Part shown: one piece after another, positions 12,360 through 35,260 of the stretch | How positions within the stretch are numbered: position 1 is the first letter of the stretch | Layout of the letters: each line of letters begins with the position of its first letter | Source of the DNA: Basidiobolus meristosporus CBS 931.73 | Taxonomy: Eukaryota; Fungi; Basidiobolomycota | Length of the DNA stretch: 64,000 nt | Assembly (NCBI GenBank): GCA_002104905.1 | Contig: MCFE01000493.1 | Location: 2,804 to 66,803, forward strand | Reading direction: 5' to 3' | Program-made: the position numbers and the translations under genes | The notes under the pieces: generated by a model | What the model was told of the DNA's origin: nothing | Database searches by the model: none | Seen by the model: the letters and a program-made list of their open reading frames with translations, nothing else

Positions 12360-12411
12360 TCCCATAAAGATCCCGAATGTTTATAATCACTGGGATTTCA
12401 TTGGTACCAGC
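12360..12411 (+). promoter_or_regulatory. TCCCAY + TATA-like bipartite promoter of RNA copy 1
   Basis: TCCCA at 12360-12364, then 16 nt, TTATAATC, 23 nt and the element start. The spacing matches the other three copies. Confidence 0.6.
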
Positions 12412-12590
12412 ATGGAAGTTTGTTTAGTCATATTTGATTAAATCGACTCCAACTATCCAATATATGTGCAAATATGGGGATGGCCGTTCAATGGCTTCGC
12501 TCCTTCCATGGTACATTATATCAATGTTGGGGCATCTGAAATTCGTGGTCGAATATTTCGCGCGAGTTATTATTGTCCACGACAATTCAT
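12412..12590 (+). ncRNA. Unassigned structured RNA candidate, copy 1 of 4
   Basis: 1 mismatch to copies 2 and 4, with sharp boundaries. AUGGAAG/CUUCCAU long-range stem and a 3' hairpin followed by ACA. Confidence 0.65.
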
Positions 12591-13202
12591 ATATAGTCTT
12601 ATTACAATCACTGAATCCAAACATAAATAATAATTACATCCGAGAATGCTGAAGCAGTAACGCTCGTCAACACGATAAATCACGATTGGCTTAATAAGAA
12701 GTAGATAAATTTTCTCATACTCACGCTCCAGACCAATCAGGAATCTCCCTGGTTATCAGAATGTTGGGCATGCATTGCTCATCAAGAGCAGGCGATCTTG
12801 ACGTTGTTTACGAACCAATTTACCGGTTATGTTCAGGAAAGTGGGAAGAAATTTCTCACCGCATGAGTTTTATCACCAGATTCATTCCCGCATTTGGAAC
12901 TTGATAGCCCATTGCTGAGAAATCTCTCTCCAGTTGCCATTGAAGCCAGTGAAGGTCACAACATCAGTATTAGCTGGCGTTAACTTTTTAAGAACAAATG
13001 GTCATTCGTGATTTCTGCCTTCTTTAAACGGGTAAATCCGGCTCGAAAATCGAGAACTCGCACAATTTCATGACCGCTTGCATCCCAGCTGGTGGATATG
13101 GTCCTCGTAATGGTGGGATCATCAACACACTGTTCTATAAAAGCCATCCCATGCTACCAGCATAATCATACAGTGAAGACTTCACTTTTATACTATCTAA
13201 GG

Positions 13203-14584
13203 ATGCGCTGCTCTGCTCTTCTCTCTTTAGTGTTGCTCTCTGCTTCGGGGCTGTTGGCAGCTCCAGTGACCGAGTTTCTGACTCGTCCTGTTCGCTATGA
13301 CAACCATAAGCTGCTCCAAGTGAAACGTTCAGATGCCTTGCTTGAACTCGTCAACAAAAACAATCTGGATGTTTGGCACAAGTCCAGCAGTGTCCTACAT
13401 ATTCGCGCGTCTCCTGAGGACATCGATGCACTTAGTGGGTTCGAATCAGAAGTAATCGACGAGAATGTCCAGAAGAGTATTGATGAAGAAACTGAGGTCT
13501 TGAAGCAAGCCTCGCTGGTGAAGCGTGCTGTTGATGATGCCACTTGGTTTCAAAGCTATCATACATTTGCTGACATAGTCCAATGGTTGCAGCAGCTCTC
13601 GAAAAAATACCCAGATCTGGTCACCTATGTGCCATCCATTGGCAAGACCACCCTGGGTAAGGACATCCCAGCCTTGAGGATTACCAGCAAGAACGGAGGA
13701 GAAAAGAAGAAGATCTGGTTCCAGGGACTTCAACATGCCAGAGAATGGATCGCTACCACGACCATGCAGTACCTGGCTGACGGATTCGCCTCAGGGTACG
13801 CCACCGACTCTGACATCAAGGGAATCCTTGACGCAGCCGAGATCATCATCATTCCAGTATCGAATCCAGATGGGTACGAATATACCTGGAACGGGGATCG
13901 TCTATGGAGAAAGAACCGTCGCAACAATGGTGGTGGAGTGTATGGGGTCGATTTGGTAAGCGCTCTATTGACTCTATTAGTATCATAAATAGTATGTAGT
14001 TACTGCATGATTGTGAATCCGTTGCTGATTCCCGGCCATTTCTATTTTAGAACCGTAACTGGCCTGATCATTGGAATCAAGGGGGCTCCTCCAAGAACCC
14101 CAGTGATGAGACTTTCATGGGACCATCAGGTGGCAGTGAGCCAGAGGTGAAGGCATTGATTAACTACTTTTTGCAACAGAAAAATGTTGTTGGGGCCATC
14201 GATTACCATTCTTATGGTGAGCTGATCATGTGGCCATACGCTTGGACCTACTCCAAGGTTGCCAAGAGTGCCGAATATGCCGCACTTGGCAAGGCCATGA
14301 AGAGTGCGATCCGAACTGTCAATACTAGTGAGAGATACACCACACAACAAATCAGTGATTTGTATGTGGCCTCAGGCAGCTCCTCCGACTGGTTCTACGG
14401 TGACCAAGTTGCTCAAGCGCAAGGATTCCGTAGCACTTCGATTGCAGTTGAGCTCTCCCCTTCAGGTTCAGGCGGAGCCAGTGGATTTGTGTTACCTCCT
14501 CAGAACATCATCCCGGTCGGTAAGCAAACACTCGCTGCAGCCAAGGTATTCATCAGCAATGTATTGAAAAGCCCTATCAATTAA
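13203..14584 (+). CDS. Secreted M14A zinc metallocarboxypeptidase (paralog 1); exons 13203-13955, 14051-14584
   Basis: Signal peptide and propeptide. HARE, RKNR, DLNRNW, DYHSY and catalytic VEL motifs. Confidence 0.95.
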
Positions 14585-14689
14585 GTTTACACGAGGCCAA
14601 ATACCATGAAGAGATCTGAATAAAGTAACTTCGACATGACCAAGATTTAGAGTTTGTGTAACTAAGGTAAATACATATAAGGATTATAT

Positions 14690-14868
14690 ATGAGTTGTCG
14701 TGGACAATAATAACTCGCGCGAAATATTCGACCACGAATTTCAGATGCCCCAACATTGATATAATGTACCATGGAAGGAGCGAAGCCATTGAACGGCCAT
14801 CCCCATATTTGCACATATATTGGATAGTTGGAGTCGATTTAATCAAATATGACTAAACAAACTTCCAT
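14690..14868 (-). ncRNA. Unassigned structured RNA candidate, copy 2 of 4
   Basis: Identical to copy 4 and inverted relative to copy 1. Confidence 0.65.
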
Positions 14869-14921
14869 AATGATGCCAAAGTCAGATGAGGGTATTTATT
14901 ACCGAGGGGAAATCTATGGGA
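14869..14921 (-). promoter_or_regulatory. TCCCAY + AATAAATA promoter of RNA copy 2
   Basis: On the minus strand: TCCCA (14921-14917), 16 nt, AATAAATA (14900-14893), then 24 nt. Confidence 0.6.
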
Positions 14922-15217
14922 GACTCACTGAATTCAGGCTATTTCCAGATAATTATCATCGTTTTGAGGCACCATGATGAGTAACTCAGGTCAAGCCCCA
15001 ATCCCGTTTTCTACCTGACCTTACAACATCAATACAGTACACTGGTGGCTAGAAAAAGATCCAAGCTGTTTACTGGTTGACTGATTGGCTGGGCTTGAAT
15101 TTACTGCCTCCACTTGTGGAGCCTAATTATATCATTTGAAGCTCTATCAATAGGGTCAACAACACCCCTCTATTGTTAACCTATTGCAAACTAAACCCAA
15201 CGTTACTTTCGTTTACC

Positions 15218-16059
15218 ATGAACCAACCTGGTGCTGGTAAGTCTAATACTTCCTTGGAAGCCGCGTATTTCCTGAGAGTCGTTTGCCTAACTTATCCCTC
15301 TCTAGATCGCAGACTGATGGCCTGGTTTCAGGCTGTTGATAGGTGAGTGTGAAGAGGCTAGTTTGATGGTGCCGGAGATGTTTTACTAAGCTTCATGTCA
15401 TCTATCCTCCAGTGATAAATCGGGCGACATCACTGCTGAAGAGCTTCAAGTCGCCTTGAAAAATGGTACACCTTGATCCCAGTTGATATATCCTCCCTTC
15501 TTTAAACTCACGCCCCACGTTTAGGGGACTGGACCCCCTTCAACATTGAGACCGTTCGTTTGATGATTAATCTTTTCGACCGTGACAACAACGGCACCAT
15601 CAACTACCAAGAGTTTGTTGGCCTGTGGCGCTACATCGAAGACTGGCAAAGATGCTTCATGGGCTTCGACAAAGATCGTAGCGGATACATCGACTCCCAA
15701 GAACTTCTAGAAGCCCTGAGAGCATTCGGATACAACCTCAGCCCACCATTCGTCAACCTTTTGATCCGCAAATACGATCGTAGAGGTACCGTTTTAGCTT
15801 TCATTCCCCTTCCGGGCGGAGCACTGACTCTCTGAATCTCACAGGAAAGGGCGATGTATCGTTCGACAACTTCATCCAAATCTGCGTAACCATTCGCTCG
15901 CTTACCGAGTCATTCCGCCGTTTCGATTCCAATGGTGATGGCTGGATTCAGATCAACTACGAGCAGGTAAGCTTCAGCGCCATTCCGCATCCAGGCCAAC
16001 CTTGACTAATCCTCGGATTCATCTAGTTCTTGGAGCTTGTTCTCTCCAACAACCGTTAA
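15218..16059 (+). CDS. PEF1: Penta-EF-hand protein (PEF1/ALG-2-like), multi-exon
   Basis: EF loops DKSGDITAEEL, DRDNNGTINYQEF, DKDRSGYIDSQEL and DSNGDGWIQINYEQF. Confidence 0.9.
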
Positions 16060-16283
16060 TTAGTTAGAATGGGCGATATTTAGTAATACCCCAGGTTTCC
16101 CATGATTGTTGATGTCGTCTAATATTATGTAACTTCCTCTTCTCTCACTCAGCCAAAATGCATCGATTGATTATATAAACCAAGATGAGCAAATCTGAAA
16201 CATGTACGGCTAACAAAAGCTAATAATGCACTGCATGGCGGCAGGATATAAATTAATTGACAAAGGATTGTTGTTGCCAAAGA

Positions 16284-17688
16284 ATGCGAACTGTTCACTC
16301 ATTTACTCTTCTACTCTTGACGTCGGCTCAAGTCTTCGGAACACCAGTCACGGACTTGATCAGGAAAGTAGTCCGTTTCGATGACAATAAATTGCTGGAG
16401 TTACGGAACACCCCGGCACTGGCGAGCTTCCTTGAAAGCAGGGATATGGATGTGTGGCGGGTGACTGAAGAAGTAGTACACATCAATGCCGATCCCATAG
16501 ACATGGTTAAACTGGCACCATTTGGATATCAGGTGTTGGTGGATAACCTTCAGGATCGCATTGACCAGGAAAGAGCTGGCCCCAAGTCGGTGAACACTGC
16601 TGACGATTCCAGCTGGTTCAATGAGTACCATACCTTTGACGAAGTTGTCAAGTGGCTGGAGAGGTTGGAGCAGAAGTACCCACGGCTGGTCAAGCTCGTC
16701 CCATCCATTGGCAAAACCACGCTTGGAAAGGATATTCCAGCGATCAAGATTAGCGGGAGTAGGTCAGGCCCAAAGAAGAAGTTCTGGCTGCAGGGGTAGG
16801 TGCATGTGGAGTGATTGTGTGAGGGAAGCGAGCTAAAACGGACCTATTCAGGGTCCAACATGCTAGGGAATGGATTGCTGGCTCGACTATGCAGTACGTC
16901 GCGCATACCTTGACCAATGGCTATGACTCCGATAGCCAGATTAAGAAAATCCTGGACACTACGGAGTTTGTCATTGTGCCTATTGCAAATCCAGATGGTA
17001 TGCCTTCATACATTGGATCTTCAGTCCGTTTTCTTACCCATTTGCAGGATATGAATATACCTGGACCACCAACAGATTCTGGCGTAAAAACATGCGCGAT
17101 AACGGTGATGGAAGCTACGGAGTAGACTTGGTAAATGCATATATAAATACACATGCTTCCCGCATAGCTAAATCTCGGGGTTAGAATCGCAACTGGCCGG
17201 ACCATTGGAACAAGGGTGGGTCCTCAAGCTACCCGAGCTCCTATGTGTATATGGGCCCAAGCCCTGCGAGTGAGCCAGAGGTCAAGTCGCTCATGGCTTA
17301 TTTTCTGAAGTCAGGTCCTTTCCATGGTGCGATTGATTTCCACAGTTATGGTGAATTGATCATGTATCCGTATGCATGGTCGAAGGACACACCAGCTAAT
17401 GGGAAAAGGTATCAGAAATTGGTGGAGTCAATGAAACCCACTGCAGAGTACACTGCCCAACAGAGCAGTGCACTCTACATTGCTTCCGGTGCCTCTGTGG
17501 ACTGGTGGGATAGCCCACAGGTAAAGAAGATCCAAGGGAAAGGTTGCGCCTCCCTCATCATCGAGCTGGAATCCAAGTCAGCAGATGTTGGGTTTGTTCT
17601 TCCACCCGATAGAATTGTCCCCGTTGGGGAGCAAATGATGTCCTCCATCAAGACATTTGTCAAAAGTGTGAGTGAAAACCCATTCTAG
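16284..17688 (+). CDS. Secreted M14A metallocarboxypeptidase (paralog 2, divergent); exons 16284-16795, 16854-16997, 17048-17130, 17185-17688
   Basis: Signal peptide. QHAREW, DLNRNW, DFHSY and IEL motifs after splicing. Confidence 0.93.
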
Positions 17689-17951
17689 CTCTGAATCGTT
17701 GTATATCTGGTTATATCCTTTAATGATGTAATAAAGTTTTGGAAATGATGCCCCTTTGACATGGACTGATCAAACCTGGAAGGCGAATGTTGTGTTTGTA
17801 CCTTTATTCTAGTCTAATAACGGTAGATAAATTACAATAATTGATGTGAAGGTAAAACAAAGGCAGTAAATATATATGAGGCAGAGCAATAAATATCACT
17901 GACAAAGCCCAAGTCATTGAGGAGGGCGCGGCAAAGAATAATGTACTGAGC

Positions 17952-19015
17952 CTAAATCTTCTTGGCCTTTTTCTTCTTCTTGGTGCTCTTATCGCCATCT
18001 TGCTCTGCGTGACGCTTTTTGTTAGCAGGGGTTTCGCCAACGTCTTGGGGAGCTTCCTCGGTAGGGATAAGTGATCCGCTTACGGTGATCATGTCGTTGG
18101 CCTTGACGAGGCTGTTGGACAAGGGTTAGCACGCAATCCACAATAACACAAACACCATAAACACTTACTCCTCGACAGTGAATTCCAACCAGCCATCTGT
18201 GCCGATGGGGGTACCGTTATGCTTAAATACCCATTCACCGGTGACAGGAGCCTCTTCGGACTCACTGGCCTCAGTAGTCTCTTGACGCCACTCGTATTTG
18301 GTTTTTGGAATACACTCGGCTGGAATGGAGGCGTTGAATGTATTGTACAAAAGCAAACCAATGTGATCTTGTGATTGTAGGTTGATGATACCGACTGGAT
18401 GAAGATCCCCGTTAATTTACGAACTTGCCACATCCCTCTCGACACATAACTACGTACCCAACTTGATTCCCTTCTTAGGTTTCCAAATGAGAAGATTGAC
18501 TGTAATCCAGAAGTGGGAGTAAGGCGAATCGTACATTATTCTGCCGGTCTTCTCGAGTATCTGCAAATCGGAGTGGGCTAAAACGATGCCATCCACTTGA
18601 GGTACATAGCTGAGACGAAGAAAAGTCAATATCCTGTGCCATCCCGGCAAAAATCTGTAAAAACCTACCGCATTAAGAAGCTGTTAAGTTGCTCGTTGAT
18701 GCCCTGAAGGGGATTGTTGCAAAAGCAAGGCGGGAGGGTGATGTACATTTTAATGCATGTTTCAGCAAATGGAGAAGCGCTTGCATTGTTCCGCTCTAGA
18801 TCGGGATAAGGCTTGGTGATAGGAATGGGCGACTTGAAGAAGGTTCGCTTCTTGGTGGGGGTGGCTGGAGCTTCGGGTTGGTCAACATTTTCGGTTTCAA
18901 GAGACACGATCTCTTCAGAGAGCTCCTTTGACTTTTTGGCTTTCTTTTGCTTTTTGGAAGGGGTAGCAACGGCTGGGCTACTCTCCAGCGTGACCGATTC
19001 TTTTCTCTTGGCCAT
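17952..19015 (-). CDS. RPA43: RNA polymerase I subunit RPA43, multi-exon
   Basis: YITLPP..GINEQLNSFLMRYVPQVDGIVLAH, IMYDSPYSHFW..WKPKKG, LLYNTFNASIP and WLEFTV motifs. Lys-rich ends. Confidence 0.9.
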
Positions 19016-19942
19016 TTCGGGTTGAAGGTGTTGAACCAGCCTAAACCTCTTCTCAGTGGAGTATCATTTTTTTTTCTTTAGTCGAACTTTTTTCTAATCA
19101 TTTTTTTTTACGCGTTAAAATTTTGACTGAAAATGTATGCAGTTAAAATCAAAGTTGTATGCAACATTGATTTTCTCGCCTGAATGGGAATGGAATGTTC
19201 GACTCGCTCAACCGCTGAATTCATATATAATACATAGCTCCATGACAACGCTCCTTTGAGATTCTACTTCACGTAGGAATCTTGCTGGATAACTTGCTCG
19301 GTATACATCGCTGGATATGACCATATCAAGGAAGACATCCTACATCAATTTATAGAGATATAATAGAGGAGCCACCAACACCTCAGAATTAACTTTAGCT
19401 GTGGGAATGTGCCTGAGACCTCTACAAACATTTCCTTTTTTCCAAGTTGGGGCGTACTTAAGCTCAACAATTAAACCCATTTACAAAGAGAACGTGGTAG
19501 TAAAGATCACCATAAACACAGAACAAACCGACCTTCTTCTCGCGGTAGTATCCATACAAAGCCTAGTCCCCTCATGTCCAAATTATATAGCCAAACTAAG
19601 TCCCAACACAAACCCAAAATATGGAAATGCCTGGGATACTTGTCAACCATTAGGTAACATTAAAATTCCAAGGTAAAATGAAAACATCGAAAAGATTTGA
19701 ATACGTTCCTTTTATGGGAATGTTCATTCAGCATTCATTTAGATGACATACTCATGGTTAGACTAATATATTTGTCGGCCAGTGGTTTAATGGGTACTTA
19801 GTAGTCACTCCTGAGGTTTCTCCCTTCTCCTCAGCTATTCTTATTTTTCGTCATATCCTGTACACTTCACTAAGGTCTTCGCTACTGTTGGATAAAACGA
19901 CAGTTGTTTTATAGAGAATCGATATATAGATATATATCTAAT

Positions 19943-22900
19943 ATGTCGAAGTTTCTAAGTAGAGTTGGTAATCAAATAGACGTACTACAACGTCGGTTAG
20001 AGTCCGGTAACAAGCCAACGGTCCAATTTAGCCCATTACCTGACTCACCACCTGAGGAATTTTGCACTTCGGTTGCTGATGACATACCGTCAGGACGGAG
20101 GAAGGACTTGAAATACCGTAGAAAAAGAAGGCAAAACACATTACTCTCCCTGTTTGGAATTGACCCTGTTCGTGAGAAATTAGGGACTTTCGAAGGAGTA
20201 TTCGTTCCTGTATGCTTATCCATCTGGGGAATCATGCTGTTTGTCAGACAGGGTTATATCATAGGGCAAGCTGGCTTGGTCGAGACTTTCGTCATGTTTA
20301 TTGTTGGCTACCTTATTGCATATTTCACCACCCTTTCTTTATCTGCTATTTCAGCAAATGGAACTGTTCGTGGTACGCTCTGCATTCTTCTCTTATCGAT
20401 ATGTGCCTTCGCACCTATTCAGAGGCGCTACGTGAATAGCCATACTAACTCGTTTTTCAGGTGGTGGTCCGTACTATCTCATTTCGCGTTCTTTGGGTCC
20501 AGAGTTTGGTGGTAGTATTGGCTTAGTTTTCTGGTTCGGAACCATTTTGGGCGGGGTGCTCAACCTGTTGGCCTTTGTCCAACCTTTGCTGACCACTTTC
20601 GGCGAGCAGCAAGGTGCTATGTTTAACGTATTACCGGAGGGGAAGGTAAGCCATTTATCAGAGTACTGCACTGTAATGAGCCTCTCCCAAGTTAACCATT
20701 TTAAACACTTCACCAACAAAGTGGAGCGGTTTTTTCTACAGTTCGGTTTTATTGCTTTGCTGTACTGGCGTCTGTCTCATTGGGTCCAAGGTATGGTTTA
20801 GAACGTTTCAATACAAGCCCTAGCTCTATGACCGTTGTAGTTAACTATTACCCTAGGTCTTCGCGCGCACCTCAATATTTCTCTCGTTTATTATTCTTGT
20901 GTCGACGTTGATTATTTTCCTCTCGTTCTTCATCCGATCCCCGTTTACTGACGTAGACAACGGCATTGAATATACGGGATTGAGCATTCAAACATTGAAG
21001 GAAAACCTGTGGCCGCAATATTCACCTTCAGCAGAGAACCCTAGTAAAGTGGAAAACTATCAAAGTATATTCGCTTTGGTGTTTCCGTGTTTTGTTGGAA
21101 TAATGGCAGGTAATTTGTTCTGCTCGTATAGTTTGCTAGCATGTAAGGCTAACGGTCAAGACGCCAGGAACCTCAATGTCTGGTAATCTTCGTAAGCCCA
21201 GCAAGTCCATCCCTAAGGGAACCTTGGCTGCTGTGGTGGTCACGTTCATGCTCTATATGATTATCAATATCATGTTGGCTGCTTCCACCACCAAAGAAAC
21301 CCTTTTGAAGCGCTTGAGCATCCTTCAGGATATTTCTATCTTCCCTAGTATGGTTGTAGCTGGCGCATTTGCTACCGCCACTTTTGCTACCCTCAGCGCT
21401 TTAATATCATCAGCCAAGATTATCCAAGCCATTGCTAGGTGAGTCTCCCCTAATTTCCTTGGCCGCTTCGTTGGCATTAATATTTCTTACAGAGATCACC
21501 TTCTTCCCATCCTGTCGCTATTCGACCAAGGCACTGACAGATCAGACGATCCCACCTACGCCATTATATTCTCCTATATTCTAATCCAGCTGTTGTTGCT
21601 TACTGGAAGCATTGGTGTGGTGGCGCCATACTTTACCATCTTGTCCATCCTGACATTCGGGATCACCAATCTTGCCTGCTTTTTGCTGAAGATTGGCTCT
21701 GCTCCCAATTTCAGACCCTCCTTCCACCATTTCAAGTGGTACACCGGGTTGATCGGTGTTTCCTTGTGCTTTACCACGATATTCATTATCGACCCACTTC
21801 TGGCCACAATCTCCACCGCGTTCATGAGTATCATGTTTGGTGTCATTCATTATACCACTCTGCCCAAGTCCTGGGGAGATGTCACCCAGAGCCTCATTTA
21901 TCATCAAGTTCGCAAGTACTTGCTAAGATTGGACACTCGTAAGGAACATGTGAAGTTTTGGAGGCCACAGGTAATACCAGCCACCCGAGACCATTGTGTG
22001 TCCATAAGCCAACTAACCATTGCCAAAGATCTTACTTCTAGTCAACAACCCCCGGAACAGCTATCATTTGATCCAGTTCTGCAACTCCCTCAAGAAGGGC
22101 TCGCTGTACATCCTGGGGCATGTGCTGAAGGGAAACTTCCGTTCCAACTTGAACGAATTCCGGAAACAACAAAACGTTTGGCTAAAGTTCGTGGATATCA
22201 CGCAGATCAAGGCTTTTGTTCAGCTGACTATCTCCGACTCGGACAGATTTGGGGCTCGGAATCTGATCGTGGTATGCGGATCCACCACTTCATTCTTGAG
22301 GGAAGCCGTCGTTGCTAATCAATTTGCTAGGGTTCTGGACTTGGTGGAATGCGGCCTAACATCGTCGTGCTTGGCTTTTTCAACTCGTCTAGTCATGAGG
22401 AGAGCCATAACAACAAGAGGAAGCACGTCTCAATCCCCATTGTTGGCTCTCTTCCCACCGACCGAAACAAGCAAGAAACACCGATTCCTATTACGGACTA
22501 TGTGTCCATCATCGAGGACACGCTGGCATTGAACAAGGCGATCGCGATCGCCCATGGCTTCTCCAACCTACGAGACCTACCACCGCTAGATGATGATAGT
22601 AATCTTTTCTCGGCGCACTCTGGCCAAAAATCCCGCAAGAAATACATAGACATCTGGCCCATTCAATTATCCATTCCTAGCGCTTACAACGAGAACGGAT
22701 ACTTGACCAATTTCGATACCTACACCATGGTGCTGCAGATGGGATGTATTCTGCACATGGTTCCATACTGGAAGCAGAACTTCACACTTCGTGTGATGTG
22801 CTTTGTGGAGCGTCGGAGTGATGTTGAGGAGGAGAGAAGGAGGGTTGAGGTGCTGCTAGAGAATTTGAGAGTAGAAGCGGAGCTGCATGTCTTCTGGCTG

Positions 22901-23506
22901 GATTGTGAGGAGCTCACCACATACTCTGCCATTGTCAAAGGTAAACATATCTCTCACCAGAACGATGGCCCCGAGCAATCCAACGGTGTGGATGTTGGGG
23001 AGTCGGCAAGCATGCCCATTGAGAGTGGGTCCTCCCAGTACCTTCGCTCCTCCGGGACTAACTTCAGCCAAGTCTCCCTGAGCTACTCGCAATCCGGTGT
23101 TGTTGGTATGAAAATCAACGTGCCGATCCCGGAGCGAGGGGATGATCATCTAAGTGAAGACTCTGACCTATCTGATATGGAGGAGGTTGAGGAGGAGCAC
23201 ACCCACAGCTTCCCACCCTCCGCTGCTGGATCGGTTGCTACCAGCCAGGAGACGCACAGTAACTCATCCACCGAATTCAACGACCTCCCACCCCACGCAC
23301 AAAATATTATTCTGAATGAGTTGATGCGCTTGCGCTCCAAAGACGCCACCATCCTCTTCACGTCGTTGCCAGCACCAGATCCTGGAACGTGCGAGGAGCA
23401 GGAGAAATGCGAGTACTACATGAACGACCTGAAGCTGCTGGTTAAGGACCTCCCACCCACTTTTCTCATCCACGCCAAATCCATGACCGTCACCACTCAT
23501 CTTTAG
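19943..23506 (+). CDS. VHC1: Cation-chloride cotransporter (SLC12/VHC1-like), multi-exon
   Basis: KLGTFEGVFVP..IWG, SAISANG, GGPYYLISRSLGPEFGGSIG, SGNLRKPSKSIPKGT, APNFRPSF and HVKFWRPQ motifs. C-terminal SMTVTTHL. Confidence 0.92.
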
Positions 23507-23924: not shown

Positions 23925-26153
23925 ATGCTCAAACGGTTCACCCTATTTCCCGAGAGGTCTCTCCCGGCCCTTCTTCTCAAGAAGCGCCCCGAACAGAAAA
24001 ACCTCGCCGCCCCAACTCCGCTCGCGCTGACTCGGAGCGAGGCCGCACACACCCTTGCCTTTGATACCAACCATCCCCACCTTGGCGCGAACTCCTCGGT
24101 GGTGGTGTCTAACTTCCAAAACGCACTCGTGCACAGGAACCTCGAGGGCGCTTGGAGCGCCTTCCAGTACCTGCTTGACAACCAACTGGAGAGTAGACTC
24201 ACCGCCAGTCAGCTCTCCCGGCTGCTTCAACTGTTGAACGGATTCAAAGGGAAGTCCGCCGAGTCCCAACAACGCAGTGCTCAGGTGGTGGTTTGCATCG
24301 ACCAGCTCGACGCCAAAAGGATGTTTCGAAACGCACGGGAATACTCTCCTTTGGTCTCCCACTACGCCAAACGGGGTCAAGTGGGTGAGGTGAACTCGCT
24401 GATTCTCGAGATGCTCGACAGAGGAGTTCAACCGGACGCGGTGATTTTCAACGACTTGATCAATGCCGCCGGCAAGGTCCACCCCGAGCAGGCATTCTCC
24501 GTGTACGACTCTATGCTGCAGCAAGGGATAGCGCCCACCAACGTGACATTCAACATCCTTCTGAATATCTGCAAACGTCAACGCAAGCTCGACTTCACGG
24601 TCAGAGTGCACAAGGCGGTACGAAGCTCGAATGTCCGCCCGGATAGCTCGGCGTACAACATTCTCATGGATCTGTACGCGAAATCCAACCTTCTGGACCA
24701 GGCGATCCTTACGTACGACGAGATGCTTGCTAACCACGTCGCGCCGGATACAGTCACGTACAACACCCTTTTGAACGCATTTGCCAAGAAGAGGTCCATG
24801 GACGGGGTCAGCCAAATGTTCGAGGCCATGTTGAGCCGAGGTGTCCCGCCGAACGTGGTCACCTTCAGTATCTTGATCGACGCTTACGCTAAGCATCAGG
24901 ATATCGAAGGGGCTATGAGGATCTACGAAGAGATGTTGCGGCGGGATATCCTTCCAGATACTCTGATCTACAACACTCTTATCAACGGCCACACAAAGAA
25001 TTCCAACACCGACCAGGCCATGATGCTCTATCATGAGATGGGGGCACGCCGTCTCCCCCGAAACATCGTCACCTACAACACTCTAATCAACCTTCATCTG
25101 AAGCAGGGGAATTTCGATCAGGCCCTGGAGCTGTTCAACGAGATGTCCTTGGGAACGACCCCGCCCGACGTGATCACCCTGAACACCATCATCAACGCAT
25201 ATGTGCGGAACGCTAGACTTGACGAGGCCACCAAATTCCTGGAGAATTTCGCCCGATTCAACATCCGCCCCGACACCATCACGTACAACACGCTCATCAA
25301 CGGCCATGTCAAGAATTCGAGGCTCGAGCACGCGGTTGACCTCTTCACCGAGATGCAGGCCAGAAACCTTTGCGACATCGTGTCGTATAACACCATCATC
25401 AACGCCCATGCGAAGAGCCTCGACCTGGAGGCGATGAGGAAGGTCTATCGTAGCATGGGCCAGCACAAGGTGTCGCCAGATATCATCACGTTCAACACGA
25501 TGCTTCACGCCTACTTCGAGAGCCGTGCCCTGGACCAATGCCAAACGCTACTGAAGGAAATGAGCCTTAGTCGGACCCACCCAAACATCAACACCTACAA
25601 CACGCTGATCAACGGCTACTCGAAGAACGGGGATATCCCACGCGCGTTGCAAATCTACGATGAGATCCAGTTCCAAGGGATCCGCCCCAACCCCACCACC
25701 TTCGGAGTCTTGATCAACTGTTACAATCTCTCCGGAGACCTTGAGAAAGCGTTCGAGATCTGGGACCAGGCGAAGAGACACACCACGGACAGGGAAAAGC
25801 TTGCTGCTCCGCTTTCCGCCCTCCTGGATGCCTGCGGGTATCACCACGAGTCCCGCCGGCTGACAGAGCTCTGGAGTGAGCTGGAGGTCACCAACCACCC
25901 TGTCACCGAGAACAACTTCAATTCATACCTAGAAGCGTTGTGCCGGTGTGGCAACTACTCCGAGGCTGTTCGAGCCTTTACCCACGACATGACGCTGCTG
26001 AACCTTCAGCCTACACTGAAAACGTGGCGAACCCTGTACACGGAGGTTAAGCGCTGCCATCCCTCCGGCATCGAAGAGATCGGAATGTTCCTAGAAAATG
26101 AACATCCCCACCTCTACCCGGACTTCCATCGCGCCCTGGAAGATGACCTGTAA
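23925..26153 (+). CDS. P-type pentatricopeptide repeat protein, probably mitochondrial (intronless)
   Basis: About 15 tandem 35-aa motifs (P[D/N]xxTYNxLI..). Basic, targeting-like N-terminus from the first true ATG. Confidence 0.92.
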   Translation: MLKRFTLFPERSLPALLLKKRPEQKNLAAPTPLALTRSEAAHTLAFDTNHPHLGANSSVVVSNFQNALVHRNLEGAWSAFQYLLDNQLESRLTASQLSRLLQLLNGFKGKSAESQQRSAQVVVCIDQLDAKRMFRNAREYSPLVSHYAKRGQVGEVNSLILEMLDRGVQPDAVIFNDLINAAGKVHPEQAFSVYDSMLQQGIAPTNVTFNILLNICKRQRKLDFTVRVHKAVRSSNVRPDSSAYNILMDLYAKSNLLDQAILTYDEMLANHVAPDTVTYNTLLNAFAKKRSMDGVSQMFEAMLSRGVPPNVVTFSILIDAYAKHQDIEGAMRIYEEMLRRDILPDTLIYNTLINGHTKNSNTDQAMMLYHEMGARRLPRNIVTYNTLINLHLKQGNFDQALELFNEMSLGTTPPDVITLNTIINAYVRNARLDEATKFLENFARFNIRPDTITYNTLINGHVKNSRLEHAVDLFTEMQARNLCDIVSYNTIINAHAKSLDLEAMRKVYRSMGQHKVSPDIITFNTMLHAYFESRALDQCQTLLKEMSLSRTHPNINTYNTLINGYSKNGDIPRALQIYDEIQFQGIRPNPTTFGVLINCYNLSGDLEKAFEIWDQAKRHTTDREKLAAPLSALLDACGYHHESRRLTELWSELEVTNHPVTENNFNSYLEALCRCGNYSEAVRAFTHDMTLLNLQPTLKTWRTLYTEVKRCHPSGIEEIGMFLENEHPHLYPDFHRALEDDL

Positions 26154-26444
26154 ATGTAGCGTATGAACATGGCTCTAATGTCCAGCATACGCAACCTCCC
26201 CCCCCCCGCCACCTGAGCCCTCGCACACTTGGCCGTTGTATCTTTCGTTGAACCTTGTCACTCCCCAGCAGCACGGGGTAGAATGTGTATAGCAAGAATG
26301 TACTTGAATAAATTCTCTCTCAAGAAGCACGTCGATGCCATTTATTTGTCTTTTTTGGGGGGGGGACGGGATGGGATGTGGTGTGGTGTGGTGTGGTGTG
26401 AGCTCTACCTAGTGGACAGGAAATCCCGGCCGAGTCACTTCTCT

Positions 26445-27332
26445 TCACTGTTTGGTGAAGTATTCGGGAAGGATGTAATGGAGCTTGTCGGACTTGCACG
26501 CCTCTGGTGGGGACATGATTCCATATTTCATACCGCCAAGGACACCCTTGGTGACGCTTCCATCAGCGATGCCCTGCTCAAGGGGCTCGAGAATGGCAAG
26601 CAACAGCTTCTTGGCGTTGCTTGCGTTGGTGACCATGGTTTTCATCACGGCATCGGCGGTGACGGCCTCTTCGGACTCTCTCCAGCAGTCGTAGTCAGTA
26701 GACATGCAGATCATCTGGTAGGCGATCTCTGCCTCGCGGGCCAACTTGGCCTCAGGTAGGGCGGACATGTTGATGACACCGCCGCCCCAAGAGCGGTAAA
26801 GGTTGGACTCGGCACGAGTGGAGAAAGCGGGACCTTCCATACATACCAAGAGCTTGTCCTTGTGAACGGTAAGGTTCTCGACAAGGTGGCTGTGGTTGGC
26901 GATGATTTCAGCCGCAGCGGGGCAGAAAGGATCGGCAAAGGAGGCATGGCCAATGATACCCTCTCCTTCGAAGTAGGTGGAGGGACGGATTCCCTTGGTG
27001 CGGTCAATGATTTGGTTGGGAAGGACGAAATGGGTGGGTGCGAGCTCCTCTTGAAGGGAACCGACGGCCGAGAAAGCGAGGATAAGCTTGACGCCGATGG
27101 ACTTCAAGGCGGCAATGTTCGCTCTGGCCGGGACCTCGGAGGGGCTGAATTGGTGGTGGGCGCCATGACGAGCCAGGAAAGCGATTCTCAACCCGCTGGG
27201 GATTTTCCCGATAATAATCTTGGAGGAGGGATAGCCCCAAGGGGTGTTTGGGTACACCTCCTCGACAATCTCCAGGTTGTCCAGGTTGTAAAGGCCAGAG
27301 CCGCCGATAACCGCAATGTTTACTGGATGCAT
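26445..27332 (-). CDS. MEU1: 5'-methylthioadenosine phosphorylase
   Basis: IGGSGLY, FLARHG, EGPAFSTRAES, INMSALPEAKLARE and STDYDCW motifs. Confidence 0.96.
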   Translation of the reverse strand: MHPVNIAVIGGSGLYNLDNLEIVEEVYPNTPWGYPSSKIIIGKIPSGLRIAFLARHGAHHQFSPSEVPARANIAALKSIGVKLILAFSAVGSLQEELAPTHFVLPNQIIDRTKGIRPSTYFEGEGIIGHASFADPFCPAAAEIIANHSHLVENLTVHKDKLLVCMEGPAFSTRAESNLYRSWGGGVINMSALPEAKLAREAEIAYQMICMSTDYDCWRESEEAVTADAVMKTMVTNASNAKKLLLAILEPLEQGIADGSVTKGVLGGMKYGIMSPPEACKSDKLHYILPEYFTKQ

Positions 27333-27733
27333 GGTAACAAAGAGTAGGCCGAGAAAATTTGGCCAAGTGGGTTATTTGAACCAGCGTCCTTTCTTGATTT
27401 GGCCTAGATTTCCTCGAAATGGTGCAATCATGTCGGTCGGGATTCTCAGCAGGCCAATAGGTAGCTGGCCTTTCTCCCCTGAGTCGCGGGTGGAATTCGA
27501 TAAGTGGGCCCCACCAATGAATTCGTAGGATCATATCGACCACCATCACCCGGATTTCGTGCTGGTTATTGCGAAGAAACAAGGGTTAAGCAGAATTAGG
27601 ATGCTTGCTTATTTTAGTTGGTTAGATATGGTAAGCGGGTCAATGATTAGTTTTCCTAAGCCAGTTATGGAATTCCCTTAACAGAGAAATTGGTTAAAGC
27701 ACTGTTTACGAAGGATTGTTCGCTTGGTTTACT

Positions 27734-29572
27734 ATGGATTCTCACGCCGCCTACAATGAGCACAGCCATCAACATGGCCATGAACACGGTCATGGACATG
27801 AGCATGGAAAAGAACACGCCCATGGTGACGTCAAGGAAGAGCACTTGAAGGAGGAGCAGGAGCATTTCAGAAAGGTCATCGCCACCTTCGCTTCCTATCG
27901 TGTTCACAGCCACGGAACAAACAAGAGGAAGAAGGAAAGCTATGCTGCACTTTCTGAGGAACACAAGGCTTTGATACCCTTCTACTTGGATCGTTTGAGC
28001 CAGATCGACGAGGCCATCAACAAGAACTACTCATTCTTGAAAGCGATCGTTGCCGATCATCAGATCTTCGTGGAGCAGGAGGGCCAGGTAATGCTCAAAG
28101 TACCTACACACTCCCCCATTTTCGACACAGTCGATTCATACGGCTTCGCCAACAGGAGATCTCTCACCTTCAGATCCAGCCCAACAAGGAGCGTCCTGCT
28201 GTTACGGAGTTCGACATGGACAAATTGCGTAGCACTTTGAAGCAGTTTGTTCGCGACTGGAGCGAAAAGGTAGGGCTGCCGTTTACCCTCGACGCACGCG
28301 CATCACTCAACACCAACTTGCAACTTTCGTCGCTTCGCTAGGGAAAACATGAGCGTGAGGCAGCCTATTCGCCAATTTTGGAGGAGCTTGAGAACTACTA
28401 CGGCGATGTTCCTGTGGACCAAAGGTAATCTTTGACACACGCACCCGTCCATCGTCAATTCAAACTCTTGCTAACCGGAGTATTCAACAGGGGTAATCTT
28501 CGAGTTCTAGTCCCGGGGGCCGGTTTAGGCCGGTTGGCATACGACATCTGTAAGAAAGGTATAGTGCACTGGTCGTGATGGTTGGATTCCACAGATTATT
28601 AATCGATTCGAACCATCTCACCCAGGCTTCAGCTGCCAAGGTAATTTCTCAATACACTGTAATGCTTGCTTGGACCCGGAACTTAACAGAGATTCACTTC
28701 TTAAGGCAACGAGTTCTCCTTCTACATGGTAAGTCGCGCAGGTTTTAAGCGAGCCAGCGCACGTCAACTGACAAATTACGAACCCTATCTCTTAGCTTCT
28801 GGCCTCGAACTTTATCCTGAACAGGTGAGTTAGCTCATGGCCCTATCTCCGGACCAACGTTGAACTAACCACGGGAAACAGAGCAGCAGAGGTAGAGCAA
28901 TTCGAAATCTTTCCTTTCGTCCATTCCCAATCGAATGCGCTCCGCGAAGAGCACATCTTGCAGAGTGTGCGTATTCCTGACGTACTACCCTCTGGACTTC
29001 CCCCGAGCTCCGACTTCTCCATGGTTGCCGGGGACTTCTTGGAGGTGTACGGGGCGGAAAGCGATAGCGTTGGTAAGAAAGAAAATCCTCGGTGGAGTCC
29101 TGCACCAACCCATTAACCAGCAATCCAATCAGGCACCTGGGATTGCATCGTGACGTGCTTCTTTATCGACACCGCCAAGAACATCATCCAATATCTGGAG
29201 ACCATCTACAACGCGTTAAAGAAGGGTGGAGTGTGGATCAACTTGGGTATGCTCCGGCGAGATAGAAGTAGCGCGTGGATGTTCAGCTAATAGGGATTTT
29301 CTAGGCCCACTTCTCTACCACTTCGAGAACACCCCTGGGGAGATGTCGATCGAGCTGACTTTGGAGGAAGTCAAAGCCTTGGCCACCAAAGTTGGTTTCA
29401 CCATTCAGGTAACTACTTTCTCCTACCCTACCCTCTCGCCACTTCAGCCGACTGACCGTTCGATTCTCTCAATCAGCGCGAGGCCATGCACGAATCCGCA
29501 TACACCGCCAACGTTCAATCCATGCTGAGATACACCTACAACTGCGCCTTCTTCTCCGCGATCAAAGAGTAG
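27734..29572 (+). CDS. Carnosine N-methyltransferase (CARNMT1/YNL092W-like), many small exons
   Basis: [50 protein letters not shown] and [13 protein letters not shown] motifs. His-rich N-terminus. Confidence 0.92.
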
Positions 29573-29660
29573 CACGTGTCTTGTCTCCCCATTCAACAAT
29601 AAAGGTGGCTTGCTTAGAGAACGTTTATTGAAATATGAAATCAACATAGATAGTGAGCAT

Positions 29661-32600
29661 CTAGGAGTAAACTGGCAATATGGTTACCTGCGCATTTGCA
29701 TCAGCCTTGGGGGAATCGGGAGCGATGTTGCCCACGGGCAAGATGGAAACTGGGGCATTCAAATCCTCCACTACATCTGCCTCGTTCACAGGCAAAATAG
29801 AGACCGGGCCATTCAAGTCCTCCTGCAAAGCGTCAGAGGGGCTGGGCTCTACCTCGTTAACTGGTAGTATGGAAACCGGAGCATTCAAGTCCTCCTGCAA
29901 AACGTCAGAGGGGTTGAATTGGCCGATGGGAGTATCGGTTGATTGAGGGCTGATCGATTCGCCCAGAGTGATCAGTTCACTTGGGTCGGGGTTGTTGATC
30001 ATACGGTCGCAGTCGAAGTCCCATCTAGATCTCCACCTGTGTTGGATGCATTGTTGCTTGGTCCAAGGAGTGCCGTACACCAAAGGACTGAACGAAACGA
30101 ACACATACACGACCACGAGTGAGCTGACCAAAAGTACCAGCCAGCGAGCTTTAGTGTTCAGGCGTGAGGTGAACAGGTCGAACGTCACTCCGGTCAGGAG
30201 GATACCGAAGTAGATGGCCGGCAGGTAATGGTGCAGGAAAAGCTGTCTTCCCATCAAGAAGAATGGCAAGTAGTGCAAGAACCAGCCGAGGAAGAAGAAC
30301 CCGGCCGACGAGAAGTAGAGATTGAAGTATTCTATGCATGGGAAAAGAGGTCGGTTAGTTCCAGGGAATCGTGCATTCGAATCGGCCAAATTTACCGTAG
30401 GCGCCATCGTTGTAGCCTCTCTTTTGGCGCAGAATCAGCAAGGCGTTAACGGCAATGTAAAGACCAACCGCTGCAGCCGCTGCCCACCAGATAATGGGGT
30501 TTCCGAGAAGGTAGATTTGTGCGGAGTCCTTCGACCAGAAGCTGATTCCTCTATTGATGAGCGGCCAGGCAGAAGGTCTGGAGTCGAAGGGATGGGAGTC
30601 GGTCAAGCCGTTGTTGATGGTCCACATACGCTTCTGAAGCTCCCAGAACTTCTTGAAAAAGCCTGGTGTACGATAGTTCACTCTAGGGGCATCCTCAGGG
30701 ACTATAGACAACACAGAAACATCAGTGAATACGAGAGCATGCTTTGTGCTTAATACGAAGCGTCCTTACGCCTTGGGTCAACGTTGGTGTCAATCAACCA
30801 CAGAGTTTTCTCTAGCTTGGCGCTCTTCATACAAGTGACTTCCTGTTGTTCCGATGCCCACTTGGGCAATTTTACATCGTGTGAGAATAAATGGCAGTGT
30901 TGTCCGATATGAACAAGTCGGAATCTGCTGTAAATAGCCATCAGTCTGTCGGCAGATTCGGGGACACGGTCGTCGTGATCGATGATCTCCACTCTCCAGT
31001 GATCATTGATGTCTCCCCATTCGTACCCACTACACAGTCAAAACCAATTAATAAAGCAGGACTTCATTCGTTACGAAGGATGCGCAATCGTACCTGACTT
31101 CGTTGTGATGCTCTGCTTCAGTAATCGGGGCACGAACATCGTGGCTGTGTAGGCGTTTGCCGGTAGAAGGGTGGAGTAGGCGAACAATGTCGCCATTCTT
31201 TACCCACTCCAACTCAGTCTCGTTGTACGGAACCTCGGGGTCCTCAATCTTGGTGATGACCCACCAGTTGTTTTCGTCGCGGTGTGGATAGAGGGTAATT
31301 TGTTGTTCTATATATCTGATAGTTAAGCGTGCTGTGGCTCAATCAACAATCCCCTCTTCAACTTACGTTTACTTCCGGTAGGGTAGAAAAGATCGTGAGA
31401 ATGAAGGTATCCTCCGTTGGTGTTCAGATGGCGGATATAAACCTTGGAGCCGTAGGCGACATCTAGGAATGCGTGGGTTAAGGCGAGAGCTGAGAAAATG
31501 AACAGCGTTGAGCAAACCCATTACCAGCTGGAGTATCCCCAATGCCACCTCCACTCAGGGTGCTTTGAAACTCTGGCGACATAAACCCATTTCCGTCACC
31601 GCTGTTTCTCAGGCAGAAAAAGTGGATTTGGAATAGTGCCAAATAAACTACGACGGGAACAGCGATCAAGCTGAACGCGCGAGCAAAGAAATGCTTGGCG
31701 ACAACACTCTAAAAGGACAGCTGATTAGGACCAATCGAAATCTCTAGGTTACACAAAAATTACCGGGGGAACCGAGCTATCCACAGTGAAATCCCAAAGT
31801 TGCTTGATAGTTGAAAGTCCGATCAATGCGATGATGAACAGCCCAACCCATTTCACACTGGATGGAAGAATTAGTAAACTCCAACAGCCTACGATCAACT
31901 GATGAGGAAAGTACCTGACGGACAGCCCAAGGAACAAGCCAGTAGAGGTTAGCCAGAACCACCATGAGGAAGAGAATGGGCTGGAAACCTGGGATTAGAT
32001 TGAATTGCTCCGCTCAAGCTATATGCGTGTAGACTACCTTTCACTCTGATTGCAGAATTGCACCCACGACAGTGCGGTCAAAGCAGTAAAAAACAATAAA
32101 GGAGAGTCCAATAAGATCAAACGAGACTGGGTCACCAAGGCATTGTCTGTTGATGGAGAGTATACATTTAGATACCCGCCAAATGTTCAAGTATGCCAAA
32201 TGTACGCGCTTACCGAAGGTCACGAAAAGTGCGCTCAAAGTAGCAGCTGGTGTGGAATGACCCGATAACTTGACTGTCAAGTAAGAAATAGGCACCAAAA
32301 GCCAACCCATAATTGCCGGTAGCAAGCGCATGGCAACATATGGCACCTGTGGCTCGATGTAATCTCTGTAAAAGCAGCATACGTCAATAACCTCGGTGTT
32401 TGTTCTAGAGACTAAATAGCAACCTACTTTCCGATTTCACTAAAGTCGAAATTTCCATCAAAGCCCCCAAACCAACCAGCAGCGGCAAGTAACATCTTGG
32501 CAAGTGGAGGATGTACATCCATAAAGAACCTACCATGAATGTACTTGCTTGCAAAGCCTCCAAAGTGCACTTCGTCAAAACTGCCCTCGCAAAGGAACAA

Positions 32601-32868
32601 CAGAGAAACATTACACTCTGGAAAACAAGGTTGAAGAAAATAGAGAGGGGAGAACTTACACTACCGAAGTTGGATGATCCAGTCTATAAAAGCGCACAAA
32701 CCCTGCAAAGACTGTCAGGGCGGCGACAATGTACCATTGAGTTTTAGACAAGTGCAAGCTTTTGCGGGAAACGGGCTTCTTTCCGGATTTGAAATTGTCA
32801 TCTTCCCAGTATTCATTCGACTCGTCGAGCAGAGGCTCCTGGAATTGCTTCCGATTTCGGACGTACAT
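29661..32868 (-). CDS. Dolichyl-phosphate-mannose protein O-mannosyltransferase (PMT1/2 type), multi-exon
   Basis: [23 protein letters not shown] domains ([20 protein letters not shown]), GNPIIWW and [11 protein letters not shown] motifs. Confidence 0.93.
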
Positions 32869-33203
32869 GATCAATCGGAGGTTATGGTTAACTTCTGGAA
32901 GTGAGCTCCTCTAGTAACCAACAGCTTTGGAATTTTCACCAATCCGAATCAATTGGTGACGCCAATGTGTCTACAGTATTGGATACCCAGCAAATCTATG
33001 ATTATTCATGTGATTTATGTCAACATTCGTGACTCTATGCCTAGAATTGCTGGAATCCACGATGGCTTTTGATTGGCACATCAAGCGAAATAGCAACCAT
33101 TAGTTGACCGAGCCTGGTCGCTTCGATGACGCATCAACCGACGTTAATATGTGATTAAAAGTAGATCGATCATTTAGGTTTGTTGTTTGCGTTGTATGTT
33201 GAA

Positions 33204-33381
33204 ATGAGTGTTGTGAGCAATAATAACTCGAGCGAAATATTCGACCACGAATTTCAGATGCCCCGACATCGATATAATGTACCATGGAAGGAGCGAAGCC
33301 ATTGAACGGCCATCCCCATATTTGCACATATATTGGATAGTTGGAGTCGATTTAATCAAATATGACTAAACAAACTTCCAT
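33204..33381 (-). ncRNA. Unassigned structured RNA candidate, copy 3 of 4 (variant)
   Basis: The 5' ~100 nt are identical to the other copies. A few changes lie in the 3' hairpin, and ACA is retained. Confidence 0.6.
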
Positions 33382-33435
33382 GGTCATCTCCCAACCATCA
33401 GGATGCTATTTATTGGATCGACCACCTCTGTGGGA
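33382..33435 (-). promoter_or_regulatory. TCCCAY + AATAAATA promoter of RNA copy 3
   Basis: TCCCA (33435-33431), 16 nt, AATAAATA (33414-33407), then 25 nt. Confidence 0.6.
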
Positions 33436-33565
33436 CGTTAGTTATTCGTGGTTGTAAAATACTATTGATAGAATGTTTCACCATGACGTCTAAAAGAAAG
33501 GGAACAGTGCTGATCTTCGGGATGTATAAAAGCCATGAAAACCATCAGAATTGACATATCCAAAG

Positions 33566-34932
33566 ATGCGTATATCTTCTCTCTTTTTCGCTTTATTCGC
33601 CACTGAGGGGTTGTTGGCGGCTCCAGTGACCGAGTTTCTGGCTCGGCCTATTCGTTATGACAACCATAAACTGCTTCAGGTGAGGCGCTCGGGTACTTTG
33701 CTTGAAATTGTTAACAAGAACGACCTGGATGTCTGGCACAGGTCTGCCAGTGTTTTACATATTCGAGTGTCTCCCAAACAGTTCGAATCGCTGAGTGGGC
33801 TTGAATCAATAATACTAGACGAGAATATACAGAGGAGTATTGATGAAGAAACTGAGGTCTTGAAGCAAGCCTCGCTGGTGAAGCGTGCTGTTGATGATGC
33901 CACTTGGTTTCAAAGCTATCATACATTTGCTGACATAGTCCAATGGTTGCAGCAGCTCTCGAAAAAATACCCAGATCTGGTCACCTATGTGCCATCCATT
34001 GGCAAGACCACCCTGGGTAAGGACATCCCAGCCTTGAGGATTACCAGCAAGAACGGAGGAGAAAAGAAGAAGATCTGGTTCCAGGGACTTCAACATGCCA
34101 GAGAATGGATCGCTACCACGACCATGCAGTACCTGGCTGACGGACTCGCCTCAGGGTACGCCACCGACTCTGACATCAAGGGAATCCTTGACGCAGCCGA
34201 GATCATCATCATTCCAGTATCGAATCCAGATGGGTACGAATATACCTGGAACGGGGATCGTCTATGGAGAAAGAACCGTCGCAACAATGGTGGTGGAGTG
34301 TATGGTGTTGATTTGGTAAGCACGCAACCAAATTTATTACCGAATGTTCCCTGAATGCTGTGGAATCCGTTACTGATTCCCGGCCATTTCTATTTTAGAA
34401 CCGTAACTGGCCTGATCATTGGAACCAAGGGGGCTCCTCCAAGGACCCCAGTGATGAGACTTTCATGGGACCATCAGGTGGCAGTGAGCCAGAGGTGAAG
34501 GCATTGATTAACTACTTTTTGCAACAGAAAAATGTTGTTGGGGCCATCGATTACCATTCTTATGGTGAGCTGATCATGTGGCCATATGGCTGGACTACGT
34601 CTAAGGTTGCCAAGAATACTGAATATGCCGCACTTGGCAAGGCCATGAAGAGTGCGATCCGAACTGTCAATACTAGTGAGAGATACACCACACAACAAAT
34701 CAGTGATTTGTATGTGGCCTCAGGCAGCTCCTCCGACTGGTTCTACGGTGAGCAAGTTGCTCAAGCGCAAGGATTCCGTAGCACTTCGATTGCGGTCGAG
34801 CTCTCACCCCCCTCGGCGAGACGGGGATTAGGATTCATACTACCTCCGGAGGAAATCATTCCTGTCGGTAATGAAACCCTCGCAGCAGCCAAGGTATTCA
34901 TCAGCAATGTATTGAATGAACCTATCAATTAA
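33566..34932 (+). CDS. Secreted M14A metallocarboxypeptidase (paralog 3, close to paralog 1); exons 33566-34315, 34399-34932
   Basis: Same motifs and intron position as 13203-14584. Confidence 0.95.
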
Positions 34933-35028
34933 GTTTCCACACGTTTGAAAAAACATGAATCTTGGAATCACAAGAGAGGCGGGAAAGTAAACAGATTTAG
35001 ACATTCAGTTGTTGTAAATGTATACAAT

Positions 35029-35207
35029 ATGAGTTGTCGTGGACAATAATAACTCGCGCGAAATATTCGACCACGAATTTCAGATGCCCCAACATTGATA
35101 TAATGTACCATGGAAGGAGCGAAGCCATTGAACGGCCATCCCCATATTTGCACATATATTGGATAGTTGGAGTCGATTTAATCAAATATGACTAAACAAA
35201 CTTCCAT
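35029..35207 (-). ncRNA. Unassigned structured RNA candidate, copy 4 of 4
   Basis: Identical to copy 2 and in the same position just downstream of a carboxypeptidase stop codon. Confidence 0.65.
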
Positions 35208-35260
35208 ACGGACATCCAAACAAGTTGCGGATATTTATTAGGACGATCGCCTCAGTGGGA
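35208..35260 (-). promoter_or_regulatory. TCCCAY + AATAAATA promoter of RNA copy 4
   Basis: TCCCA (35260-35256), 16 nt, AATAAATA (35239-35232), then 24 nt. Confidence 0.6.

Follow-up and report, generated by a model that had tools for sequence, protein, structure and literature searches.

A multicopy RNA gene family of Basidiobolus that probably encodes a box H/ACA small nucleolar RNA with a conserved 5′ extension

A 64,000-nt stretch of the genome of the fungus Basidiobolus meristosporus CBS 931.73 (assembly GCA_002104905.1, contig MCFE01000493.1, positions 2,804 to 66,803 of the forward strand; hereafter the window) contains four copies, c1 to c4, of an element of ~175 nt which an earlier note, made from the letters alone, had proposed to be an independently transcribed small RNA gene. 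Our analysis upholds that proposal in that the copies form a conserved small-RNA gene family, each with a promoter of its own and with homologues in B. ranarum, and we consider it likely that the product is a box H/ACA small nucleolar RNA (snoRNA) preceded by a 5′ extension. The evidence that carries this is a fold of two hairpins, a hinge box and a terminal ACA, in which the distances from both pockets to their boxes fit those of H/ACA RNAs and which is maintained between the two species.

Aligned together with their 100-nt flanks, the four copies prove to be nearly identical and to lie at the positions first described (Table 1). Up to nt 111 c1, c2, c3 and c4 do not differ at all; c2 equals c4 through nt 181, c1 departs from c2 solely at nt 175, 3′ of the ACA, and c3 carries six substitutions and one deletion, all within nt 112–174 in the 3′ third (A112G, which alters the final A of the candidate H box, U117C, G151U, G170A, the two changes U165C and C166U, both of which keep pairing, and the deletion past the ACA). 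A 43-nt core has exactly four matches in the window against none expected, and an nhmmer profile search of the window returned no copy beyond these. The flanks had been described as unalignable, which does not hold for the blocks that comprise an M14 carboxypeptidase gene and the RNA copy downstream of it: M14a with c2 (13217–14901) and M14b with c4 (33575–35240) make up a segmental duplicate of 87.7% identity over 1695 bp. Inside this duplicate c2 and c4 are unchanged whereas the DNA around them has diverged by 12%, and their identity is therefore evidence of selection or gene conversion on the RNA. The upstream copies, c1 (+) and c3 (-), have opposite orientations relative to their M14 genes.

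Contigs of B. ranarum, found via the neighbouring proteins, hold at least three homologues with 83–87% identity, and the comparison between species covers seven copies (4 + 3). The full homologue (L008:12429-12598, minus strand) is 87% identical, and the 2.8-kb contig L003 (JASJQH010009870.1) has a partial homologue at each end with an M14 orthologue between them, an order, RNA(+)-M14(+)-RNA(-), that it has in common with c1-M14a-c2. Between species the RNA aligns and the intergenic flanks do not. Both ends of L003 fall within the element (at its nt 34 and nt 37, respectively), which therefore acts as an assembly-breaking repeat in the B. ranarum draft and is undercounted there. These contig breaks, together with near-identical copies within 23 kb, are what one would cite for a dispersed repeat without a function of its own, be it a short interspersed element, a miniature inverted-repeat transposable element or a retro-copied small RNA. 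The element boundaries, on the other hand, show neither target-site duplications nor terminal inverted repeats, there is no A/T tail and there are no conserved A/B boxes, the promoter motifs are external to the conserved block, with a fixed spacing and in otherwise unrelated flanks, and the stems contain compensatory substitutions. Moreover, the synteny with M14 extends across species, and the other M14 paralogue loci of both species (L001, L002, L004, L005) lack an RNA copy, so that at the loci examined the copies adjoin one M14 lineage only. We regard a dispersed repeat as highly improbable, and because two B. ranarum homologues flank an orthologous M14 gene we treat the copies as a conserved gene family and not as a mobile element. 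A scan of metagenomes with a conserved 19-mer gave two matches, both due to chance and both in coding-like DNA.

Independent minimum free energy (MFE) folds of the RNA from the two species (z-scores -3.8 and -3.3) agree on three hairpins. Hairpin A (nt 2–40) is conserved in both. Hairpin 1 (nt 53–105) consists of a lower stem (53–58/100–105), an internal loop (59–64 and 93–99) and upper stems 65–68/89–92 and 72–75/81–84, and hairpin 2 (nt 118–169) of a lower stem (118–123/163–169), an internal loop (124–128 and 158–162), an upper stem (129–136/150–157) and an apical stem (139–142/146–149); RNAalifold recovers hairpins 1 and 2. On alignment A4, 98.5% of the cells pair, against 40–47% in a control with the partners slid. 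Three pairs show compensatory changes (74–82, CG>UA; 139–149, CG>UA; and 121–165), four more stem substitutions are wobble-compatible, and the sole departure from pairing is at 135–151. The 3′ hairpin with its terminal ACA had been drawn this way in the earlier note and now has the support of covariation. The long-range AUGGAAG/CUUCCAU stem that was thought to close the element does not survive: its score is -33.4 kcal/mol, whereas the alternative reaches -43.8 and the MFE structure (the alternative with an extension) -53.8, neither MFE folding nor RNAalifold selects it, and it is shortened to 5 bp in B. ranarum. The complementarity is present, yet a 7-nt match within 175 nt is about what chance would give.

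The hinge between hairpins 1 and 2 contains the candidate H box, AUAUCA (nt 107–112). Across the copies it reads A107-N-A109-N-N-A112 (AUAUCA, AUAGUA, AUAGAA), c3 with its G112 excepted, and it varies at N positions 110 and 111. The ACA (nt 171–173), a box that in H/ACA RNAs lies 3 nt from the mature 3′ end, is invariant, and in all seven copies similarity stops directly past it. In H/ACA RNAs the distance from pocket to box is canonically 14–16 nt. Here 14 nt (93–106) separate the upper stem of hairpin 1 from A107, which places the target uridine 15 nt from the box, and 13 nt (158–170) separate the upper stem of hairpin 2 from A171, which places the target uridine 14 nt from it. ACAUUA, the H box first suggested, has to be given up, as it forms part of hairpin 1's lower stem and is too close to the pocket, at a distance of only 9 nt, whereas A107-U-A-N-N-A112 yields the canonical distance. 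Between the species no change falls in either pocket, the stems show covariation and the apices are variable, which is how an H/ACA guide RNA is conserved. A telomerase RNA was rejected, the sequence having no telomere-template-like repeat, and so was a box C/D RNA, for which the RUGAUGA/CUGA pair with its terminal stem is missing.

Each of the four copies is preceded by the same promoter-like arrangement, first described in the earlier note and found again in all of them: TCCCAY, 16 nt, an AT-rich octamer, and 23–25 nt to nt 1, which puts TCCCA at -52 to -54. The core is RTCCCAY(A/T)RAK. A strict form of the pattern has three matches in the window with none expected, all at these copies, and c1 carries TTATAATC. 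The full B. ranarum copy (n = 1) has TTCCCATAAAT at -64 and an AT box at about -31. The spacing from TCCCA to the AT box is thus 16 nt in B. meristosporus (4/4 copies, AT box at -32) and 26 nt in B. ranarum (1/1 full copy), the latter being longer by one helical turn. Promoters of plant small nuclear RNA (snRNA) genes combine an upstream sequence element (USE; RTCCCACATCG) with a TATA box at -30, to which it stands at a distance of about one to three helical turns, and the corresponding Dictyostelium element, DUSE, is [A/T]CCCAYAA. The Basidiobolus arrangement resembles both in its TCCCAY(A) core, its fixed spacing, its AT or TATA box near -30 and its association with a small stable RNA gene. 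The shift by one turn in B. ranarum recalls the plant rule by which the USE-TATA spacing differs between RNA polymerase (Pol) II and Pol III, although the 16-nt spacing of B. meristosporus is shorter than in either plant class; a literature search for the USE motif in fungi gave nothing relevant. The absence of a T-run terminator also stands, since the 45 nt that follow each copy contain no T4+ run, which fits Pol II transcription. Judged from these motifs, each copy is probably transcribed independently and by Pol II. A 152-nt contig from the one public run in which the sequence occurs lies wholly within the element (nt 16–167, or 12427–12578) and does not enter the flanks; among its differences from the window, U85C converts G71·U85 to G-C, and U110G and C111U fall on N positions of the H box. 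The contig lends modest support to a discrete small transcript, whose source would be a paralogue or a close relative.

Two further sites in the window look like this promoter. At 9213–9240 (-), TCCCACATGAG is followed by TAATAAAT 14 nt after TCCCA; the ~200 nt 3′ of it (about 9000–9188, -) have no match in Rfam and no blastn match in B. ranarum L008, and the site may belong to a further small-RNA gene. At 3012–3048 (-), TCCCAT is followed after 24 nt by GAATAAAT, which is the long spacing of the RNA copy in B. ranarum; the DNA 3′ of it contains nothing recognisable, and an Rfam search of 2300–3700 was empty.

If the RNA is a guide, its pockets should find uridines in ribosomal RNA. We searched for targets in surrogate ribosomal DNA (rDNA), namely eukaryotic contaminant units in GTDB assemblies, among them S. 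cerevisiae-like units whose 18S measures 1800 nt. The 5′ pocket (AAAUAU/UUCCAUG) forms seven Watson-Crick pairs (UUCCAUG:CAUGGAA) and three further pairs (AUA:UAU) around one 18S uridine, U805 in yeast numbering, in the predicted site CAUGGAAUAAU; the 18S stretch, GCAUGGAA[U]AAUR, does not vary among the 54 eukaryotic rDNA loci that were recovered. Chimera and splint oligonucleotides published for SCARLET place human U863, a pseudouridine guided by SNORA24 (psi863), at GGAA[U]AAUGG (PMC6776443), and the uridine predicted here coincides with it. Pairing of this extent is not rare, as 19% of shuffled pockets reach at least 10 bp somewhere in rRNA, and what carries the target call is therefore that the uridine falls on a known pseudouridine site, a coincidence that by our estimate applies to roughly one U in fifteen. 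That the 5′ pocket guides the 18S uridine homologous to human psi863 is, in our judgement, an evenly balanced call. For the 3′ pocket (UCUGA/AUUAU) the candidates are 18S U909 (3+6 bp), 18S U894 (3+5 bp, or 4+5 in certain taxa) and 25S U1819 (6+3 bp). By numbering offsets, yeast-numbering U909 would correspond to human psi966, whose 18S sequence context was not found in the literature searched. The 5′ extension shows no complementarity to the surrogate rDNA above chance.

Eukaryotic rDNA contigs contaminate many GTDB bacterial assemblies, including a set of the same length, 7682 bp, in numerous 'NPDC' actinomycetes and S. cerevisiae-like units of ~9.1–9.3 kb. The IMG/VR contig IMGVR_UViG_3300028530_000142, which is filed as viral, ends with the 3′-terminal ~390 nt of a large subunit (LSU) rRNA of eukaryotic type (12735–13115; Rfam, 222 bits) and carries a tRNA besides.

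Several observations weigh against an H/ACA guide. The variant copy c3 has G at the final position of the H box, and MFE folds pair part of the H box, with partners that differ between the species. The helices of the 5′ pocket, 53–58/100–105 and 65–68/89–92, are invariant and hence outside the covariation test. The 5′ extension is better conserved than the guide core (three substitutions and one indel between species in nt 1–52, about 19 changes in nt 53–176), which plain guide function does not explain. Target pairing was computed on surrogate fungal rDNA and not on that of Basidiobolus itself, the 5′ pocket has the shuffled-pocket rate given above to contend with, and the 3′ pocket has weak candidates only, of 8–9 bp. 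The 152-nt contig is the sole one, comes from a run that is only guessed to be of RNA, and has six mismatches to the window. Lastly, the H/ACA families of Rfam are unmatched: the window has no relevant match at gathering score, and the cmscan which the earlier note had proposed as a check finds no family in c1 with its flanks even at E ≤ 10; searches of the related loci gave nothing relevant either.

Some of these points could also be explained by a lineage-specific, snRNA-like RNA that is part of no H/ACA ribonucleoprotein (RNP), whose boxes and pockets would be coincidental and whose function would lie in nt 3–47 and in long invariant single strands. The silence of Rfam, the conservation of nt 1–52 beyond the remainder, the snRNA-type promoter, the invariance of the pocket helices, which covariation does not probe, and the looseness of ANANNA as a motif would suit such an RNA. 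It would leave to chance, however, that conservation ends exactly at the ACA, that the hinge varies at the N positions of ANANNA, that both internal loops lie at the canonical distance from a box and that the 5′ loop fits a known 18S pseudouridine site, and the RNA has no Sm site, kink-turn (K-turn) or other signature of a small nuclear RNP. We consider this explanation quite unlikely.

A more specific candidate would be a divergent U4atac or another snRNA of the minor spliceosome. B. meristosporus has 249 minor introns (PMC10639083), and its U11, U12 and U6atac have been found with high confidence while its U4atac is putative and divergent (PMC11347168). The RNA described here is in the size range of such snRNAs, has an snRNA-type promoter and a multicopy gene, and comes from a fungus whose minor spliceosome is active. 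It differs from them in that cmscan over c1 and its flanks at E ≤ 10 gives no match to U4atac, U11, U12 or U6atac, that it lacks both an Sm site (RAU3-6GR between stems) and a tandem G·A K-turn in a 5′ stem-loop, and that no complementarity of the AAGGA type, the branch-site type or the U6atac type can be read from its sequence. The published U4atac candidate is a different locus, because it was found by the same Rfam model, which is silent on this copy. We give a minor-spliceosome snRNA almost no credence.

In the H/ACA explanation that we prefer, each copy is a gene with a USE-like TCCCAY motif and a TATA-like box. We infer RNP assembly, modification, the exact RNA ends and the polymerase as follows. 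The transcript, a box H/ACA snoRNA of ~175 nt, would begin with the 52-nt 5′ extension (hairpin A and a linker), followed by a hairpin-H box-hairpin-ACA core that would bind Cbf5, Nop10, Nhp2 and Gar1. The 5′ pocket would pair with 5′-CAUGGAA-[U]A-AUR-3′ in 18S rRNA and so direct pseudouridylation of the psi863-homologous U, and the 3′ pocket would guide a second site, for which 18S U894 or U909 (yeast numbering) are candidates.

The functionally closest known system is human SNORA24, which guides 18S psi863 and psi609. The likeness extends to the hairpin-hinge-hairpin-tail plan, an ANANNA hinge, an ACA that closes the conserved block, pockets 14–15 nt from the boxes and a 5′ pocket complementary to the psi863-homologous 18S site. 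It does not extend to the sequence, where neither direct nor covariance-model similarity is detectable, nor to the second pocket, which misfits the psi609 site. Vertebrate H/ACA snoRNAs are mostly intronic, whereas the gene of the Basidiobolus RNA is independent and multicopy and its promoter is external; the RNA also carries the conserved 52-nt 5′ extension. Among other known systems are yeast RNAs such as snR30/U17, snR10 and snR37, independently transcribed H/ACA snoRNAs with extra domains and single-copy Pol II genes that have a TATA box. With these it has in common a TATA-box gene of Pol II type and hairpins beyond the two guide hairpins; it differs from them in being multicopy, in that its 5′ extension lacks long complementarity to the surrogate rRNA and, from snR30/U17 in particular, in that the m1/m2 motifs (AUAUUCCUA, AAACCAU) are missing from its 3′ hairpin loop. 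By analogy with the yeast RNAs an accessory role for the extra 5′ domain is conceivable.

A bolder proposal would treat the RNA as composite: an H/ACA guide core fused to a 52-nt 5′ domain with a non-guide role (as a pre-rRNA chaperone, in processing or in regulation), expressed in an early-diverging fungus from a TCCCAY USE and TATA code of plant and amoeba type whose spacing shifts by one helical turn. We think this doubtful; if it were true, the promoter would suggest that such an element for small-RNA genes is ancestral in eukaryotes. Categorical novelty is not supported, since in its anatomy the RNA matches an ordinary H/ACA guide of two hairpins to which a 5′ extension is added, and since its 5′ pocket suits a known pseudouridylation site in rRNA.

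Table 1. Coordinates in the window of the four RNA copies, their promoters and the neighbouring M14 genes
Feature	Position	Strand	Remarks
c1 promoter	12360..12387	+	ATCCCATAAAG (TCCCA at -52), AT box TTTATAAT(C) at -32
c1 of the ~175-nt RNA (nt 1-176)	12412..12587	+	from alignment and folding
c1 hairpin A	12413-12451	+	from folding
c1 H/ACA hairpin 1	12464-12516	+	pocket strands 12470-12475 and 12504-12510
c1 H box (candidate)	12518-12523	+	
c1 hairpin 2	12529-12580	+	pocket strands 12535-12539 and 12569-12573
c1 ACA	12582-12584	+	
M14 carboxypeptidase paralogue a	13092..14584	+	between c1 and c2
c2	14693..14868	-	same sequence as c4; convergent with the M14a gene
c2 promoter	14893..14921	-	TCCCATAGAT; AATAAATA 16 nt after TCCCA
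c3, variant copy	33207..33381	-	
c3 promoter	33407..33435	-	TCCCACAGAG; AATAAATA 16 nt after TCCCA
M14 carboxypeptidase paralogue b	33551..34900	+	between c3 and c4; 3′ limit approximate
c4	35032..35207	-	
c4 promoter	35232..35260	-	TCCCACTGAG; AATAAATA 16 nt after TCCCA

Elsewhere in the window, comparison with B. ranarum L008 brought out other short conserved blocks. Two units of ~65 nt (3114–3178 and 3291–3360, against L008 699–760 and 883–952) are 86–96% conserved and lie upstream of a DEAD-box helicase gene, where they are likely to be intronic snoRNAs. A lone 51-nt block (9302–9351, against L008 8319–8369) is 86% conserved in the midst of unalignable intergenic DNA. On the minus strand, 43053–47072 is an intact-looking copia-type gag-pol open reading frame of 1339 aa with gag, integrase and RVT_2 domains.

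Most likely, then, the four copies represent a previously uncatalogued H/ACA snoRNA family of Basidiobolus, which is useful for annotation and is no new class of RNA. The snoRNA catalogues of early-diverging fungi are nearly empty, and Rfam is blind to this family. The promoters offer a four-fold replicated example of how the lineage marks its small-RNA genes, with TCCCAY and an AT box, and should be useful for annotation and for expression tools. To our knowledge, the psi863-homologous site is not among the modified sites of budding yeast. If the target call is true, the site of human SNORA24, psi863, would be guided in a zoopagomycete too, which would bear on the turnover of the rRNA modification map and of its guides.

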